From Rebecca billardiae RCC1528 (Eukaryota > Protista > Haptophyta), in assembly GCA_965240325.2 (NCBI GenBank), contig OZ251224.1, forward strand, positions 3,224,001-3,288,000: DNA of 64,000 nt. The letters are read 5' to 3'. Under the pieces are notes generated by a model. That model was given only the letters and a program-made list of their open reading frames with translations. It was not told where the DNA came from and did no database searches. Positions 494 through 6,387 of this stretch are shown piece after piece; the stretch's first letter is position 1, and every line of letters starts with the position of its first letter. The position numbers were made by a program, and so were the translations under genes.

Positions 494-2881
494 ATGGAGG
501 ACGCTAGCGTGGCGATGGAGCTTCTCCAAGCTGAATCGGCGCGGGGCGACGCCCGTGCGACATTCCAGCTCGCCGAGCGCTTTGCTGCGGGCGACGGAGT
601 TGCACAGGACCTCGTCGAGGCAGTTCGGCTGTACCTCGACGCTGCCGAGAGCGGGCTGGCCGACGCGCAGGCCAAACTGGGCGACATCTACATGGAAGGG
701 CCTTATGGGAGAGCGCCTGAACGGGAGGCGGCCGCGCGCTGGTACCAACTGGCGGCCGAGCAGGGCCATGCAGACGCGCAGTGCAAGATGGGACGATGCT
801 TCCGTGCGGGGACGGGTGTTGTGCAGGACGCGTGCAAGGCGACGCACTGGTTCAGGCTTGCGGCGGAGCAGGACCACTCTCGCGCGCAGAGCGAGCTCGG
901 CGCGTGCTACGGACTCGGCGAGGGGGTGACGCAGGACTGGGGCGAGTCTGTACGCTGGGTACGCCGCGCGGCTGAGCAGGGCTACAGTGTTGCGCAAGCG
1001 AATCTTGGTGGTTGCTACTCCGACGGCAAGGGCGTGCAGCGGGATGTTGCAGAGGCTGCGCGCTGGTGGCGGCTGGCAGCCGAGCAGGGCAATGCAATCG
1101 CGCAGTTCAACATGGGCGTCTGCTATTACCAAGGCATGGGCGTATTGCAGGATGTGCGCGAGGCGGCGCGCTGGTACCGATTGGCCGCCGACCAGGATCT
1201 GGCGGATGCGCAGTGGCGGCTCGGGGACATCACATTCAGAGGTGCTGAGGGCCTGCCCTCGAATGACACAGAAGCGGCGAGCTGGTACCTCCGGGCAGCC
1301 GTGCAAGGCCACGCTTCCGCGCAGTACAGCCTGGGCTATTGCTGCTTAATCGGCGTGGGGGTGCAGCAAGACATGGCAGAGGGCGCGCGTTGCATCCGGC
1401 TGGCGGCCGAGCAGGGCATCGCAGAAGCGCAGTGCGAGCTGGGAGTCTGCTTCCAACACGGGAGGGGCGTGACGAAGGATGATGCCGAGGCGGTGCGCTG
1501 GTTCCGGCCAGCTGCCGAGCAGGGCCACGCCCGAGCGCAGCTCCTTCTCGGCATCCGCTTCCATACGGGTGTGGGAGTGCCTAAGGACATGGCCGAGGCC
1601 CTGCGCTGGTGTCGACTGGCAGCCGATGCGGACGACGACCACGCTTCTGCATCTGCTGCGCAATTCGTCATCGGCGCATGCTACTCCCGAGGCGATGGCG
1701 TGCCACATGACCAGGGCGAGGCGGCGCGCTGGTATCGACTGGCAGCCGCGCAGGGCAACGGCATGGCGCAGGCCGACCTGGGCGCGTGCTACGCGCAAGG
1801 GCGAGGCGTGCCGCAGGATCGATCGGAGGCGGTGCGATTGTATCGCCTTGCTGCAGCACAGGGCGTTCCCGATGCGCAATTCAATCTGGGCTTGAGCTTC
1901 GAGTGGGGCAGAGGCCTCCCGCAGGATTGGAGCGAGGCAGTGCGCTGGTATCGGCTTGCAGCAGCGAACCGCCACGCGTCGGCACAGCTCAATCTCGGCC
2001 TGTGCTACGATCGGGGCACGGGCGTGACGCCCGACCGGGCCGAGGCGGCGCGATGGTACCAGCTCGCAGCAGCTCAGGGCAATGCCCTGGCACGCCTCAA
2101 TTTGGGTCGTCGCTGCGCGGGAGGCGACGGGGTGGCCAAGGACATGCGCAAGGCAGTGCAGTGGTTCCGGCTGGCCGCCGAGGCGGGTGAGGCACACGCG
2201 CAGACCGATCTGGCCGTGTGCTACGAAAATGGAGAGGGCGTGCAAAAGGACATGGCACAGGCGGTGCACTGGTACCGGCTCGCGGCTGAGCAAGGCTTCG
2301 ACGCTGCTCAATTCCGTCTCGCCCAGTGCTTTGCGACGGGCGATGGTGGCCTGCGGCAAGATTGGAGCGAGGCCGCGCGCTGGTATCGGCTGGCCGCTGA
2401 GCAGGGCCAGGTGGACGCGCAGTTCGCTTTGGGCATGCTTTGCAAGCTCGGTGGTTCTGGCGTGCCGCAAGACGATGCCGCGGCGGCGCGCTGGGCCCGG
2501 CTGGCAGCGGCTGGCGGAAGCGCGAAGGGGTATGCACTGCTGGGGAGTCTCACATTGGCGGGTAAGGGAGTGGGACGCGATGTGGAGAAGGGCTTGGCGT
2601 TGTACCGCCACGCTGCAGAGCTTGGCTACTCCATGGATCCAATGCAGCTTATGTCCGACTTTGCCGGAGATCGTGAGGTGGCTTCCAGGTGCTGCATCGT
2701 GTGCGGGCAGACTGCCCTGACCCTGACTGCTCCTGGGATGAGAATGAAGCAGTGCAGTGGGTGCCATGTGGCGCTTTTCTGCTCGCCCGAGCACCAGCGC
2801 CAAGCGTGGAAGGCGCACAGGGCGCACTGCCGCACGTGGAGCGGCCGCCGACTGGCTGAGCCTGGTGGTGTCACACAGTGA
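494..2881 (+). CDS. Sel1-like repeat protein with C-terminal MYND zinc finger
   Basis: About 19 repeats of the type AQxxLGxCYxxGxGVxQDxxEAxRWYRLAAEQG; C-terminal CIVC...CSGC...FCSPEHQRQAWKAHRAHC fits zf-MYND; single 795-aa ORF. Confidence 0.93.
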   Translation: MEDASVAMELLQAESARGDARATFQLAERFAAGDGVAQDLVEAVRLYLDAAESGLADAQAKLGDIYMEGPYGRAPEREAAARWYQLAAEQGHADAQCKMGRCFRAGTGVVQDACKATHWFRLAAEQDHSRAQSELGACYGLGEGVTQDWGESVRWVRRAAEQGYSVAQANLGGCYSDGKGVQRDVAEAARWWRLAAEQGNAIAQFNMGVCYYQGMGVLQDVREAARWYRLAADQDLADAQWRLGDITFRGAEGLPSNDTEAASWYLRAAVQGHASAQYSLGYCCLIGVGVQQDMAEGARCIRLAAEQGIAEAQCELGVCFQHGRGVTKDDAEAVRWFRPAAEQGHARAQLLLGIRFHTGVGVPKDMAEALRWCRLAADADDDHASASAAQFVIGACYSRGDGVPHDQGEAARWYRLAAAQGNGMAQADLGACYAQGRGVPQDRSEAVRLYRLAAAQGVPDAQFNLGLSFEWGRGLPQDWSEAVRWYRLAAANRHASAQLNLGLCYDRGTGVTPDRAEAARWYQLAAAQGNALARLNLGRRCAGGDGVAKDMRKAVQWFRLAAEAGEAHAQTDLAVCYENGEGVQKDMAQAVHWYRLAAEQGFDAAQFRLAQCFATGDGGLRQDWSEAARWYRLAAEQGQVDAQFALGMLCKLGGSGVPQDDAAAARWARLAAAGGSAKGYALLGSLTLAGKGVGRDVEKGLALYRHAAELGYSMDPMQLMSDFAGDREVASRCCIVCGQTALTLTAPGMRMKQCSGCHVALFCSPEHQRQAWKAHRAHCRTWSGRRLAEPGGVTQ

Positions 2882-3026
2882 CACGCGCATCACTGATCAT
2901 CGCAGTGATGCATATGAATAATTGTGACGACGCAATAATATAGCGAATAACTACGACTAGCTAGTCAGTAGTCACTCCCGGCCAACGCGACGCGGCTCAG
3001 AGTCTCCGCTCAGAGAGATGTCAGAT

Positions 3027-3081
3027 GAGAGAGAGAGAGAGAGAGACGATATAGATCTCTCTCTCTCTCTCTCTGTCTCGC

Positions 3082-3140
<59 letters not shown>
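3027..3140. repeat. (GA)n followed by (TC)n microsatellite
   Basis: GA run at 3027-3046, short spacer, then an interrupted TC run at 3056-3140. Confidence 0.95.
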
Positions 3141-3146
<6 letters not shown>

Positions 3147-3555
3147 ACGCGATATATAGCTACCATCAGCGTACGACGTCCGTACGCGCGGTAGGATGCG
3201 ACTTCTGTAGTAGTGCGACTCACAGCAATAATTCGGATTGCGTCTGATGATCATGATGCAGCAGCGCGCCAGACGCGCGCAGTATGATCGCACAGGCGGT
3301 CGTCACAATATAGCGTAAATGTTGCCGACTTCCTTCGGAGACGATTCGTGACTGTGATTAGTACGTGCTCGGTGCTGATGACTACTGCTGACTGCAGGAT
3401 GCGGACCCGTTTGCACTCTGCAGTCTTGCCGAGCGCTCTCCGGTCGAACTCGATCCCTTGGTCGGCACTTTTGGAAGTGCTCCGGCCGCAGCCTTCCTGC
3501 GCGGCGAGGCCGCCTGCTGTCCGTGTTGCCCGGCTCCCCGCCGTGCTCGCCGGCG

Positions 3556-4935
3556 TCACTCGCCGTCACGGAAGCCGCAGACCACCGTCGTGGAGAGGGC
3601 GTGCAGCTCCTCCTCGAGCGAGTCGAGCTCGGCGCTGAGCTCGGACACGCGCTGCTCGTAGGCCTCGCCCCACCACGCGAAGGAGTCGAGCACGACCTTG
3701 CTGCTCGTGTGCTGCAGCACGGCCTGCATCGCCGCCTTGCTCGCGGCGACGAGCAGCAGCGAGCCGGCGCCCGCGTCGCCGCAACCCGACGCCGACGCGA
3801 TTGGCAGCAGCACGCGCGCCACCTTGAGCGAGTGCACGGCCCACTCGGCGACCTGCATGCTGACGGACGCGGCCTGCTCGTACGAGAGCTCGACCGCGTT
3901 CAGCCGCTCCTCCGCCGCGCCGAGCTTCGGCTGGCGCAGCGCCGCCATCACGCGGCAGTAAGCGCTCATGTCCAGCCCGGCCAGCCTCTCCAGGCACTTG
4001 CGCGCGCCCGCGAGCTCCGCGTGCGCCCGGTCGACGGTCGCGCGCTCGGGGCTGCCCGGGTAGGGCCCGCGCGTGAGCGCGGCCGCCATCATGAGGAGCG
4101 ACGCCCCTTGCGCCGCGGTGAGCGCCACGCACGTGCCCCCCGCCGGCGCGGCGAGGTCGTTCGCCAGCGCGTTGTGCAGCGACTCGAGCGTGTCGTGCAT
4201 GAGCATCATCGGCGACATCTCGCCGATGAACACGTACAGCAGCGCCTCCCACGCGGCGCTGACGTCGAGCAGGCGCTGGTGGCGGTCGACGGGCTGCGCG
4301 CCGAAGCGGCGGCGCGGGAGCGGCGAGTCCCGATCGTCGTCCGACGAGAACGCATCGTCGGACGACTCGGCGTTCTCGCGGTCGTTGAGCGCCTGCTGGT
4401 CAACGATCGAGACCATCTGCATGAACGAGGATTTGACCGCGGAGAAGTGCTGCAGGTGCGCCCTGTACTTGACGTGACGCTCTCCGAGCGCGCGCAACCC
4501 CTCCGCCAGCGTCGGCGTGTCGCTGATCGCGCCGCCCACCCACTTGAGCATCCCCATCAGCATCCGCTCCTGCTGCGACGTCGACCCAAACAACGGCTTG
4601 AGCTCGGGCGAGATTGAGAAGAGCTCGCCGTAGAAGATGGAGGCGGCCTCGGCACTGCCGATGACCGGGATGGACTCATTGATGAGTCTCATCGTGTCCG
4701 ACGTGAGGGCGAGGGCTGGGGAGCCCCCGATCGTCGGGAGCTCGGGCCGCTCGGTCGGGAACTTTGAGCCCGGGGAATCGGCCTCGATCCGCGTCCGCGT
4801 GCGCCGCGTGAGGCGGAGCCAGATCGACCGCGGGTGCATTCGCGAGCGCTGGGTGCGCTGCCAGACAACCGCCACGCCGAAGCCGGCGACAACGCCGACC
4901 AACGCCGCGCCCGCGAGAGCGGGAGCCGACGTCAT
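3556..4935 (-). CDS. N-terminally anchored globin fused to a formiminotransferase-cyclodeaminase (FTCD_C/FchA-like) domain
   Basis: Likely ATG at 4935 (MTSAPALAGAALVGVVAGFGVAVVW, hydrophobic). Globin motifs FYGELFSISPELKPLF, QQ, LRALGERHVKY, AAWEALL. Cyclodeaminase motifs LANDLAAPAGGT, AAQGASLLMM, LDMSAYCRVMAALRQPK, GDAGAG. Confidence 0.82.
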   Translation of the reverse strand: MTSAPALAGAALVGVVAGFGVAVVWQRTQRSRMHPRSIWLRLTRRTRTRIEADSPGSKFPTERPELPTIGGSPALALTSDTMRLINESIPVIGSAEAASIFYGELFSISPELKPLFGSTSQQERMLMGMLKWVGGAISDTPTLAEGLRALGERHVKYRAHLQHFSAVKSSFMQMVSIVDQQALNDRENAESSDDAFSSDDDRDSPLPRRRFGAQPVDRHQRLLDVSAAWEALLYVFIGEMSPMMLMHDTLESLHNALANDLAAPAGGTCVALTAAQGASLLMMAAALTRGPYPGSPERATVDRAHAELAGARKCLERLAGLDMSAYCRVMAALRQPKLGAAEERLNAVELSYEQAASVSMQVAEWAVHSLKVARVLLPIASASGCGDAGAGSLLLVAASKAAMQAVLQHTSSKVVLDSFAWWGEAYEQRVSELSAELDSLEEELHALSTTVVCGFRDGE

Positions 4936-5166
4936 GGGCGCGCGGGAAGGACCGTGGGCCGGTCGCGCGCGGAGCACTCTAAAGACTAACTCTTCAGAAG
5001 ACGGTACCCCCGTACCCCCATACCTTGCGGGTAAGCAAAGCGGGTGAAAGGTGTTCACAATGCGAAATACGATCCGGCTTGATCCGGCCGCGGTCCGGCT
5101 TGATGCATTGATGACGGCGGGAGACATGCGCGTGGCCGTCGCGAGCTGAAGGACCTGCGCGCGCAG

Positions 5167-6387
5167 ATGTGGCACGACCGCACGAACGTGCTCGACGCCC
5201 TGCTCGTCCTCACCGTCTACCTCCTCGTCCCCGGCTTCTACCCTCCGGCCGCCTCAGCCGCTCTTGCCGTCTACGTCGCGCGCCGGCTGCGGCGGCTCCC
5301 GCGCCTTCGCCTTCGCTCCACGCCCCCGACTGTCGAGTGCATCCTCTTCGGAGCGTCGCCGCTCGCGGGCTTCACCTACGCGCCGTGCTCGGAGGCGGAG
5401 GCGGTCGAGGCAGTGCGCGCGGCCGTGGAGCTCGGCGTGTGCGCGTTCGATACGGCGCCGCACTACGGGCTCGGCGTGAGCGAGTCTCGGCTCGCAAAGG
5501 GCCTGCAGAGCCTCCCGCGCGGCGCGCCAAAGTGCCGAGTCTGGACCAAGGTCGGGCGCTACCTCCTGCCGCGCGACCAGCTGCACAGCGCGCTTGGGAC
5601 GGGCGAGGTCCGTGGCGACGCCGTCGAGTGGGACAACATGGGCGGCTCCCCGACGTGCCTGTTCCCCGACGTGGACCAGAGCGTCGGCGAGGTGGCCGAC
5701 TACTCCGCCGCCGCCGCTCGCCGCGCGCACGACGGCAGCGTGCGCCGCCTCGCGCTGCAGCCGCCAGCCCAGCTCGCCGGTCAGCGCGTGCATGACCCGG
5801 ACACAGACGAGCGCTGCGCCGCGGCGCTCGCGCCCGATGGCGCCGTGGACGAGCTCGTGCGGATGCGCACGGCCGGAGAGATCAGCGAGGTGAGCATCGG
5901 GTGCTGGTCGAACGAGCACGTGCTGCGCATGCTCCGCTCGAAGCCGCGCGGCACCTTCGACTCCGTCATGCTCGCCGGCCGGTGGAACCTGCTGGACCAG
6001 TCGGGCGCGGAGGTGCTCGCCGAGTGCGAGCGCTTGGGAGTGCGCGTGCACAACGCGTCGGTCTTCGCGAGCGGGCTGCTCGCCGGGGGCTGGACGTACC
6101 AGAACAAGGAGGCGCCGGTCGAGATCAAGCAGCGCGCGGCGCAGTGGGCCGCTCTCGCCGCGAAGTACGGGACGACCCTGCCCGCGCTGGCGCTGCAGTT
6201 CGCTCTTCTGCCGGACGTGGTCGAGCTCGTCGCGATCGGCATGACCAACCGCACGCAGCTCGAGCAGAACAAGGCGTGGGTCGAGGAGCGCGTGGACCCG
6301 CGTGTGTGGCATGACGCGCGCCGGCTGGGCTTGCTGCCAACGAGCGTGCCGCTCCCTGCCGTCCCCACCGCGCCCTCGTCCGCATGA
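5167..6387 (+). CDS. Aldo-keto reductase (aldose/L-fucose dehydrogenase-like) with hydrophobic N-terminus
   Basis: FDTAPHYGLG, WTKVGR, RVHDPD (Asp/Tyr/Lys/His tetrad), AGRWNLLDQ, VFASGLLA. Confidence 0.9.
   Translation: MWHDRTNVLDALLVLTVYLLVPGFYPPAASAALAVYVARRLRRLPRLRLRSTPPTVECILFGASPLAGFTYAPCSEAEAVEAVRAAVELGVCAFDTAPHYGLGVSESRLAKGLQSLPRGAPKCRVWTKVGRYLLPRDQLHSALGTGEVRGDAVEWDNMGGSPTCLFPDVDQSVGEVADYSAAAARRAHDGSVRRLALQPPAQLAGQRVHDPDTDERCAAALAPDGAVDELVRMRTAGEISEVSIGCWSNEHVLRMLRSKPRGTFDSVMLAGRWNLLDQSGAEVLAECERLGVRVHNASVFASGLLAGGWTYQNKEAPVEIKQRAAQWAALAAKYGTTLPALALQFALLPDVVELVAIGMTNRTQLEQNKAWVEERVDPRVWHDARRLGLLPTSVPLPAVPTAPSSA

Follow-up and report, generated by a model that had tools for sequence, protein, structure and literature searches.

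What does an alga do with a protein in which a globin is joined to a domain of the folate cyclodeaminase/cyclohydrolase type? The question is raised by a gene at positions 3556-4935 (reverse strand) of a 64,000-nucleotide stretch of the genome of the haptophyte Rebecca billardiae RCC1528 (assembly GCA_965240325.2, contig OZ251224.1, positions 3,224,001 to 3,288,000 of the forward strand); this whole stretch is referred to here as the window. A prediction made earlier from the DNA letters alone had described the gene as encoding such a fusion, and its author knew of no description of the pairing. The fusion is real and it is conserved. It is present in 17 proteins, 15 of the haem type and two that are haem-less, and an orthologue of the window protein lies in a syntenic position.

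A conserved fusion gene

We are confident that the product of the gene is a single polypeptide composed of an N-terminal anchor, a globin and an FTCD_C/FchA-type domain. The 3/3 globin consists of residues 77-246, and the FTCD_C/FchA-type domain comes directly after it (residues 247-445). A word-based search returned 11 homologues with 44-58% identity, and the named ones are two Diacronema lutheri proteins (KFE25_008859 and KFE25_007707) and one protein from Pavlovales sp. CCMP2436. Among 1.84 billion representatives, an exhaustive profile search turned up only about ten clusters of fusion proteins. No named organism outside the Pavlovales occurs among the fusions, and this includes the results of a second word search that was seeded with a distant member. 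In the two haem-less proteins, P0079 and P0136, the N-terminal domain still aligns with the globin and Tyr B10, Gln E7 and His F8 are lost; the FTCD_C signature described below is intact. Both P0015, which is of the haem type, and P0079 come from ENA assembly ERZ25074135, and P0016 comes from a metagenome.

The closest homologue, P0002 (locus L006), also has an aldo-keto reductase as its head-to-head neighbor, and this reductase and the one next to the window gene are 65% identical. Because P0002 and the window gene share this divergent neighbor, P0002 is considered to be the positional orthologue. In a maximum-likelihood tree the window protein groups with P0002, P0003 (D. lutheri KFE25_008859) and P0005, with support of 97/97. 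In addition, a near-identical copy of the window protein, P0001 (99% protein identity), is present on an independent 1769-nt Logan contig and has the same unusual AVLQH motif that is discussed below. The coding sequence of P0001 (locus L001) differs from that of the window gene at five nucleotides (two synonymous and three nonsynonymous differences); no other relative exceeds 58% identity.

The mechanical open reading frame (ORF) is longer than the gene; it extends from 3556 to 5175 on the reverse strand, as a 539-codon frame with a GTG start. The N-termini of all the homologues align a few residues ahead of the hydrophobic segment, and the GC content at third codon positions (GC3) is 0.89-1.00, by segment, across the 459 codons from the ATG at 4935 and 0.65 in the 80 in-frame codons upstream. 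For these two reasons the start is placed at ATG 4935, and the coding sequence is a single uninterrupted exon of 459 codons plus a stop codon at 3556-3558. The same observations rule out a longer ORF that begins at GTG 5175 or ATG 5127. The DNA upstream of ATG 4935 is identical in L001, and so it is of no help in choosing the start. The original prediction therefore had the right coordinates, and its statement that the gene is one intronless ORF appears to be correct as judged by the collinearity of the homologues and the uniform GC3. Both domains also lie within one ORF on L008, a homologue contig that may be a transcript.

Among chimeric globins the known partners are of the reductase, signalling, kinase, cytochrome b5 and Roadblock kinds, and the present architecture belongs with chimeric globins or haem sensors. 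The architecture is already catalogued, in that automatic annotation names both halves ('formiminotetrahydrofolate cyclodeaminase/hemoglobin-like flavoprotein' in the JGI annotation; UniRef has 'Globin domain-containing protein'), but it is uncharacterised. Literature searches on globins together with cyclodeaminase, formiminotransferase or the Pavlovales, and on FTCD_C by itself, found no paper on the pairing, which agrees with the original prediction. A survey of cryptomonad and protist globins describes cytochrome b5 chimeras and no folate ones.

The two domains and their residues

Both domains had been expected to score in HMMER. This is the case for FTCD_C (PF04961), which scores 71.2 bits against a gathering threshold of 24.5 (E 1e-19, residues 250-407), but not for Globin (PF00042), which scores 14.3 bits and is below the Pfam cut-off of 22. 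The low globin score is attributed to divergence and not to the absence of the domain, because PDB sequence matches, the fold and the pocket residues all indicate a globin. Two of the more distant fusion relatives, P0015 (36.2 bits) and P0016 (28.1 bits), pass the Globin cut-off and have FTCD_C as well. When the globin half was compared with the PDB by phmmer, it matched the globin HGbRL (E 2.3e-9, residues 80-170), neuroglobin (3.8e-5) and thermoglobin (1.7e-3), and also Hell's Gate globin and Vitreoscilla haemoglobin (VHb). The second half matched FchA (7vg4, E 9.5e-7) and rat FTCD (4.9e-4).

Structure prediction likewise found both folds. An AlphaFold2 model built from a 12-sequence alignment has a mean predicted local distance difference test (pLDDT) score of 81 and a predicted template modeling score (pTM) of 0.75, and the pLDDT is about 90 in both domains (residues 77-182 and 217-246 in the case of the globin). 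With Foldseek the globin half has a template modeling (TM) score of 0.79 to Hell's Gate globin I (HGbI) and thermoglobin (3s1i, 7dih), and it also matches VHb, neuroglobins and flavohemoglobins, all with a probability of 1.00. The second half has TM scores of 0.82 to 7vg4 and 0.75 to TM1560 (1o5h), and it matches FTCD (1tt9) with E 4.4e-4. A fold search of the ESM Atlas found no full-length look-alike; the only match there was between the globin half and NO dioxygenases.

The globin that the original prediction had placed at approximately 4692-4216 corresponds to residues 82-240, and the PDB matches and the predicted fold support it. Its pocket contains Tyr102 (B10), Phe116 (CD1), Gln122 (E7), Met125 (E10) and Leu126 (E11), and the proximal side has Arg153 (F7), His154 (F8), Tyr157 and Phe164 (G5); the RHVKY motif is at 4465-4479. 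Thus, TyrB10, PheCD1, GlnE7 and HisF8, the four residues named earlier, are all present in the alignment. B10, CD1, E7, E11, F7, F8 and Tyr157 vary little or not at all among the 15 haem-type fusions, and His154 is invariant. Tyr102 and Gln122 align with Tyr28 and Gln49 of HGbRL in the phmmer alignment, and only five residues separate Phe116 from Gln122. On these sequence features the globin is a member of the bacterial flavohemoglobin (FHb)/HGb-like group, which PMC4476040 defines by the absence of a D helix and the presence of TyrB10/GlnE7. Position E10 is the variable one; it is Lys in 12 of the 15 haem-type members, Thr in two and Met in the window copy. The likely sixth haem ligand would have changed from Lys to Met in the window copy.

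The term 'flavohemoglobin-type', which had been applied to this globin, fits the distal pocket but not the remainder. The window protein has no match to FAD_binding_6 or NAD_binding_1 in Pfam, and the NCBIfam flavohemoprotein equivalog (NF009805), for which the cut-off is 432, reaches 21.5 bits from the globin part alone. Position G5, furthermore, is Phe164, which aligns with the Tyr of the HGbRL 'EHY' and is near-invariant as Phe in the fusion family. In flavohemoglobins the Tyr at G5 is part of a proximal His-Tyr-Glu network. Protoglobin has no Pfam match in the window protein, and the best matches are all FHb-like globins or neuroglobin.

Other relatives of the globin half (P0013, P0019, P0020, P0031 and P0040) can be mentioned. 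The globin half is most similar to very large multi-globin proteins, for instance one of 2461 residues that has 14 globin domains and one of 1208 residues from the diplonemid Sulcionema specki. It also has similarity to proteins that join a methyl-accepting chemotaxis protein (MCP) signalling domain to two globin domains. In ENA assembly ERZ25074135 (L002:4001-6245) the fusion P0015 is directly followed by P0035, a globin-only protein of 268 residues. P0035 is 86% identical to the first half of P0015 and, from this similarity, looks like a recent tandem partial duplication.

The second domain (residues 247-445, 3601-4197, reverse strand) is predicted to be all-helical and was recognized by Pfam, a PDB match and Foldseek. 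The earlier assignment to the FTCD_C/FchA-like family, which was made from a PAGG motif, a conserved Asp and xDAGxG, is borne out by the Pfam score, and the motifs are present as PAGG (264-267), Asp322 and Asp387-Ala-Gly. The score on the NCBIfam FchA equivalog (NF045657) is 41.2 bits, which is below the cut-off of 275. No formiminotransferase domain was matched in the window protein by Pfam, and the globin sits at that position. Among stand-alone proteins, the nearest relatives of the second domain are bacterial and FchA-like, with a length of approximately 205 residues.

We aligned the FTCD_C domains of the 17 fusion proteins with those of 56 stand-alone bacterial FchA-like representatives, which score 150-245 bits on the FchA model and include one from an Ardenticatenia metagenome-assembled genome. 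Ten residues form a family-wide signature. In the stand-alone enzymes Pro264 and Pro336 are each kept in 54 of the 56, Gly266, Gly267, Asp322, Asp387 and Asn409 in 53, Arg344 and Pro359 in 52 and Asn405 in 51. The complete signature is kept in 16 of the 17 fusions. Because it is kept even in the two fusions without haem ligands, the folate-type pocket is under selection independently of haem.

The exception is the window copy. It keeps seven of the ten residues and alone differs at Pro359, Asn405 and Asn409, the positions that are conserved in 91-95% of the stand-alone bacterial enzymes and in all of the other fusions. The changes are P359S (Ser359 at 3859-3861, reverse strand), N405A and N409H. 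The last two fall within AVLQH (residues 405-409, 3709-3723, reverse strand), where the relatives have N-V/C-x-I/V-N, and Gln408 replaces the Ile or Val of the others. The original prediction was correct in reading AVLQH for NVxIN, and the loss of the two Asn residues is specific to the window lineage. The syntenic orthologue retains the motif as NVSVN, and so the loss arose in the window lineage, later than both the fusion and the split of the paralogues. At constant columns, i.e., those at which no more than one of the other members differs from the rest, there are seven departures of the window protein in FTCD_C and one in the globin. Close Pavlovales relatives have one to three FTCD_C departures, with the exception of P0005, which has six. 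The fusion family as a whole differs from the stand-alone enzymes in having Ala or Ser in place of Gly265 and in lacking Asp415.

The remaining parts of the protein, all encoded on the reverse strand, are as follows. A hydrophobic segment of residues 1-25 (4861-4935) is a probable signal anchor, as indicated by a Kyte-Doolittle maximum of 2.36 for the best 19-residue window (residues 6-24) and by conservation in the homologues; a hydrophobic N-terminus had been proposed before and is confirmed by both observations. The next 25 residues contain nine Arg/Lys and no Asp/Glu, and nearly all of the full-length homologues have this hydrophobic and Arg-rich layout. By the positive-inside rule we infer a signal anchor that would leave both domains in the cytosol; alternatively, the N-terminus could be a bipartite plastid/organelle-targeting signal. 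An Arg-rich and then Pro/Ser-rich linker (residues 26-76, 4708-4860), with a pLDDT below 60, leads to globin helices A-G (residues 77-182, 4390-4707), which are delimited by the PDB sequence matches, the fold matches and the residue table. The G-H corner has an acidic, disordered insertion of 34 residues (183-216, 4288-4389) with a pLDDT of 49-65 and a variable length in the homologues. Since its GC3 is 0.94, this insertion is coding. Helix H and the domain junction (residues 217-246, 4198-4287) are the best-conserved stretch of the protein and are 93-97% identical to P0002 and P0003, versus 56-65% in the two domains.

Possible functions of the fusion protein

The closest solved sequence relative of the globin half is HGbRL from Methylacidiphilum infernorum (3wfw/3wfx, PMC4476040). 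The resemblance is considerable. HGbRL has an N-terminal FHb-like globin without a D helix and with TyrB10 and GlnE7; it has the Arg(F7)-His(F8)-x-x-Tyr propionate contacts; a non-enzymatic-looking C-terminal domain is on the same chain; and its Lys E10 is also found in most members of the fusion family. In HGbRL, Arg80 and Tyr84, the counterparts of Arg153 and Tyr157, bind a haem propionate, and Lys E10 ligates the haem iron in the closed form (PMC4476040). HGbRL is a putative sensor in which a ligand displaces Lys E10, the CE loop and E helix reorganise and the C-terminal domain is proposed to move (PMC4476040). However, HGbRL is bacterial and soluble, its output domain is Roadblock/LC7 and not FTCD_C, and it keeps the Tyr at G5 that is Phe164 in the window protein, where in addition Met occupies E10. 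HGbRL also has a fusion of helices E and F and a domain swap, whereas separate helices are predicted in the AlphaFold2 model of the window protein.

Other systems resemble one half of the protein each. FchA of Methylobacterium extorquens, a methenyltetrahydrofolate cyclohydrolase (7vg4), shares the fold, the Pfam family and the P-x-G-G, Asp322, Pro336, Arg344 and Asp387 signature of the second domain, but the identity is approximately 23%, FchA is free-standing and soluble, and the window copy is without Pro359, Asn405 and Asn409. Animal FTCD (1tt9) has a homologous C-terminal cyclodeaminase domain that is also part of a fusion and is associated with a membrane organelle (Golgi-associated, according to the PDB title), but its N-terminal partner is a formiminotransferase domain in the place of the globin. 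The formiminotransferase domain of FTCD channels its product to the cyclodeaminase. Flavohemoglobins (Hmp/FHP/Yhb), VHb, HGbI and thermoglobin have the TyrB10/GlnE7/LeuE11 distal pocket and the fold (TM 0.67-0.79); the window protein differs in being membrane-anchored, in having Phe at G5 and the 34-residue acidic insertion, and in having no FAD/NAD(P)H reductase domain. The classical globin-coupled sensors, such as HemAT and GsGCS, are also single chains with an N-terminal globin and a C-terminal effector; they belong to the sensor-globin/protoglobin lineage and have MCP, GGDEF or kinase outputs, whereas the window protein has an FHb-like globin and an output of the metabolic-enzyme type.

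The best explanation for these observations, which we hold tentatively, is a haem sensor coupled to a folate domain, the chemistry of which has been altered or lost in the window copy. The mechanism, which we regard as somewhat more doubtful and which is drawn by analogy, would be as follows. The globin would bind haem and sense O2, nitric oxide (NO) or redox state, and ligand binding would shift the CE loop and E helix, a movement that would be relayed to the C-terminal domain, as proposed for HGbRL. The C-terminal domain, which is probably dimeric as are FchA and the cyclodeaminase domain of FTCD, would bind folate and interconvert formimino-, methenyl- and formyl-tetrahydrofolate. Because Pro359, Asn405 and Asn409 are missing and Met is at E10, the folate chemistry of the window copy is probably altered or lost; this copy would then be a haem-binding regulatory or scaffold subunit, possibly paired with a paralogue, that probably no longer carries out the ancestral reaction.

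Two findings speak for a sensor. The best solved relative is a globin with a C-terminal output domain and a proposed relay, and the H helix and junction, which would connect the two domains, are the most conserved stretch of the protein. Several points weigh on the other side. The globin is in the FHb-like lineage and outside the classical sensor-globin lineage, and the haem-less family members show that a haem signal is dispensable for the FTCD_C part. The packing of the globin against the FTCD_C domain is a model prediction, the continuity of the transcript is deduced from the ORF and its conservation, and the probable change in the folate chemistry of the window copy is likewise read from conservation. 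The gas- or redox-gating of one-carbon metabolism, which the original prediction had offered, may be suggested by analogy, its best support being HGbRL as the closest solved relative.

Other explanations have to be considered. The globin could be the working part of the protein, as a membrane-tethered NO dioxygenase, O2 scavenger or peroxidase, and FTCD_C could be a mere dimerisation or scaffold domain with no folate chemistry in the entire family. The TyrB10/GlnE7/LeuE11 pocket is typical of NO-dioxygenating globins, FTCD_C-type proteins are oligomeric according to the titles of 1tt9 and 7vg4, and the window copy tolerates the loss of signature residues in FTCD_C and keeps every haem residue. 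However, a scaffold would not need the signature that 16 of the 17 members keep, even the two without haem ligands, and there is neither a reductase domain nor the proximal Tyr of flavohemoglobins at G5. We consider this explanation unlikely. A new kind of haem-folate protein, either a membrane-bound folate enzyme switched by haem ligation (O2, NO or redox state) or a protein in which a bound reduced folate or pterin gives electrons to the haem, with the window copy as a pseudoenzyme partner, is quite unlikely. As such a partner, the window copy would have an intact haem site (possibly His-Met) and a remodelled folate site, and it would regulate an intact paralogue through an FTCD_C heterodimer. 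Taken by itself, the proposal that tetrahydrofolate or a pterin, held by the FTCD_C-type domain, supplies the haem with electrons and so makes up for the missing flavin reductase is very unlikely. It takes its analogy from the NO synthases, in which tetrahydrobiopterin or tetrahydrofolate donates electrons to haem. In accordance with it, a haem domain that has no reductase is tightly fused to a folate-type pocket, with the most conserved segment as the link, and the Gly265 to Ala/Ser change and the loss of Asp415 hint that this pocket is modified. The proposal is purely analogical, though, with no support at the level of residues, and the haem-less members oppose an obligatory coupling; to our knowledge there is no precedent for FTCD_C as the holder of a redox cofactor.

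The unusual residues of the window copy might instead be due to drift in a decaying duplicate or incipient pseudogene. The seven unique departures at constant FTCD_C columns, the Lys to Met change at E10 and a long terminal branch (0.68) would fit such a decay. But the 459-codon frame is intact, GC3 in the FTCD_C part is 0.98, all of the haem residues and most of the FTCD_C signature are kept, and the sequence recurs in a second data set; moreover, the window copy is the positional orthologue and not an extra copy. Decay is thus highly improbable. Finally, the fusion is almost certainly not an artefact, either of two adjacent genes being read as one or of an assembly join, because independent assemblies have the same collinear two-domain ORF, in at least 17 proteins in all, and two of these are NCBI gene models of D. 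lutheri. In addition, only a 3-residue break separates the H helix from the first FTCD_C helix in the model, and the junction has no stop codon or drop in GC3.

If the coupling of a haem sensor to a folate domain works, the sensing of O2, NO or redox state would be linked directly to one-carbon metabolism in a marine alga, and haem sensors would have a new class of output. The family also supplies natural controls, i.e., proteins with the haem residues and an intact signature, proteins with the signature and no haem residues, and the window copy with the haem residues and a broken signature. Few members of the FTCD_C family, as far as we know, have been characterised. Pro359, Asn405 and Asn409 are candidate active-site positions, as suggested by their conservation.

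Neighboring genes

The spacer between the fusion gene and the divergent aldo-keto reductase gene is 231 bp long (4936-5166). The aldo-keto reductase gene itself is at 5167-6387 on the forward strand, and the best solved relatives of its product are L-galactose dehydrogenases, which belong to the ascorbate pathway. The reductase has an N-terminal hydrophobic segment of its own followed by an Arg-rich stretch, as does the globin fusion. The presence of the same head-to-head pair in another Pavlovales species (L006) suggests that the two genes share regulation or that their products share a location. When L001:1-321 is compared with window positions 4936-5246, the spacer is identical, and a 3-bp indel is present in the region that encodes the N-terminus of the reductase.

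On the other side, a gene at 494-2881 (forward strand) is tail-to-tail with the globin-fusion gene. Its product, of 795 residues, contains 17 Sel1 repeats and ends in a C-terminal MYND zinc finger. The 3' intergenic region between these two genes contains a simple repeat at approximately 3020-3230, in which the GC content decreases to 0.54 and two of the frames give long Arg-Glu and Ser-Leu runs.

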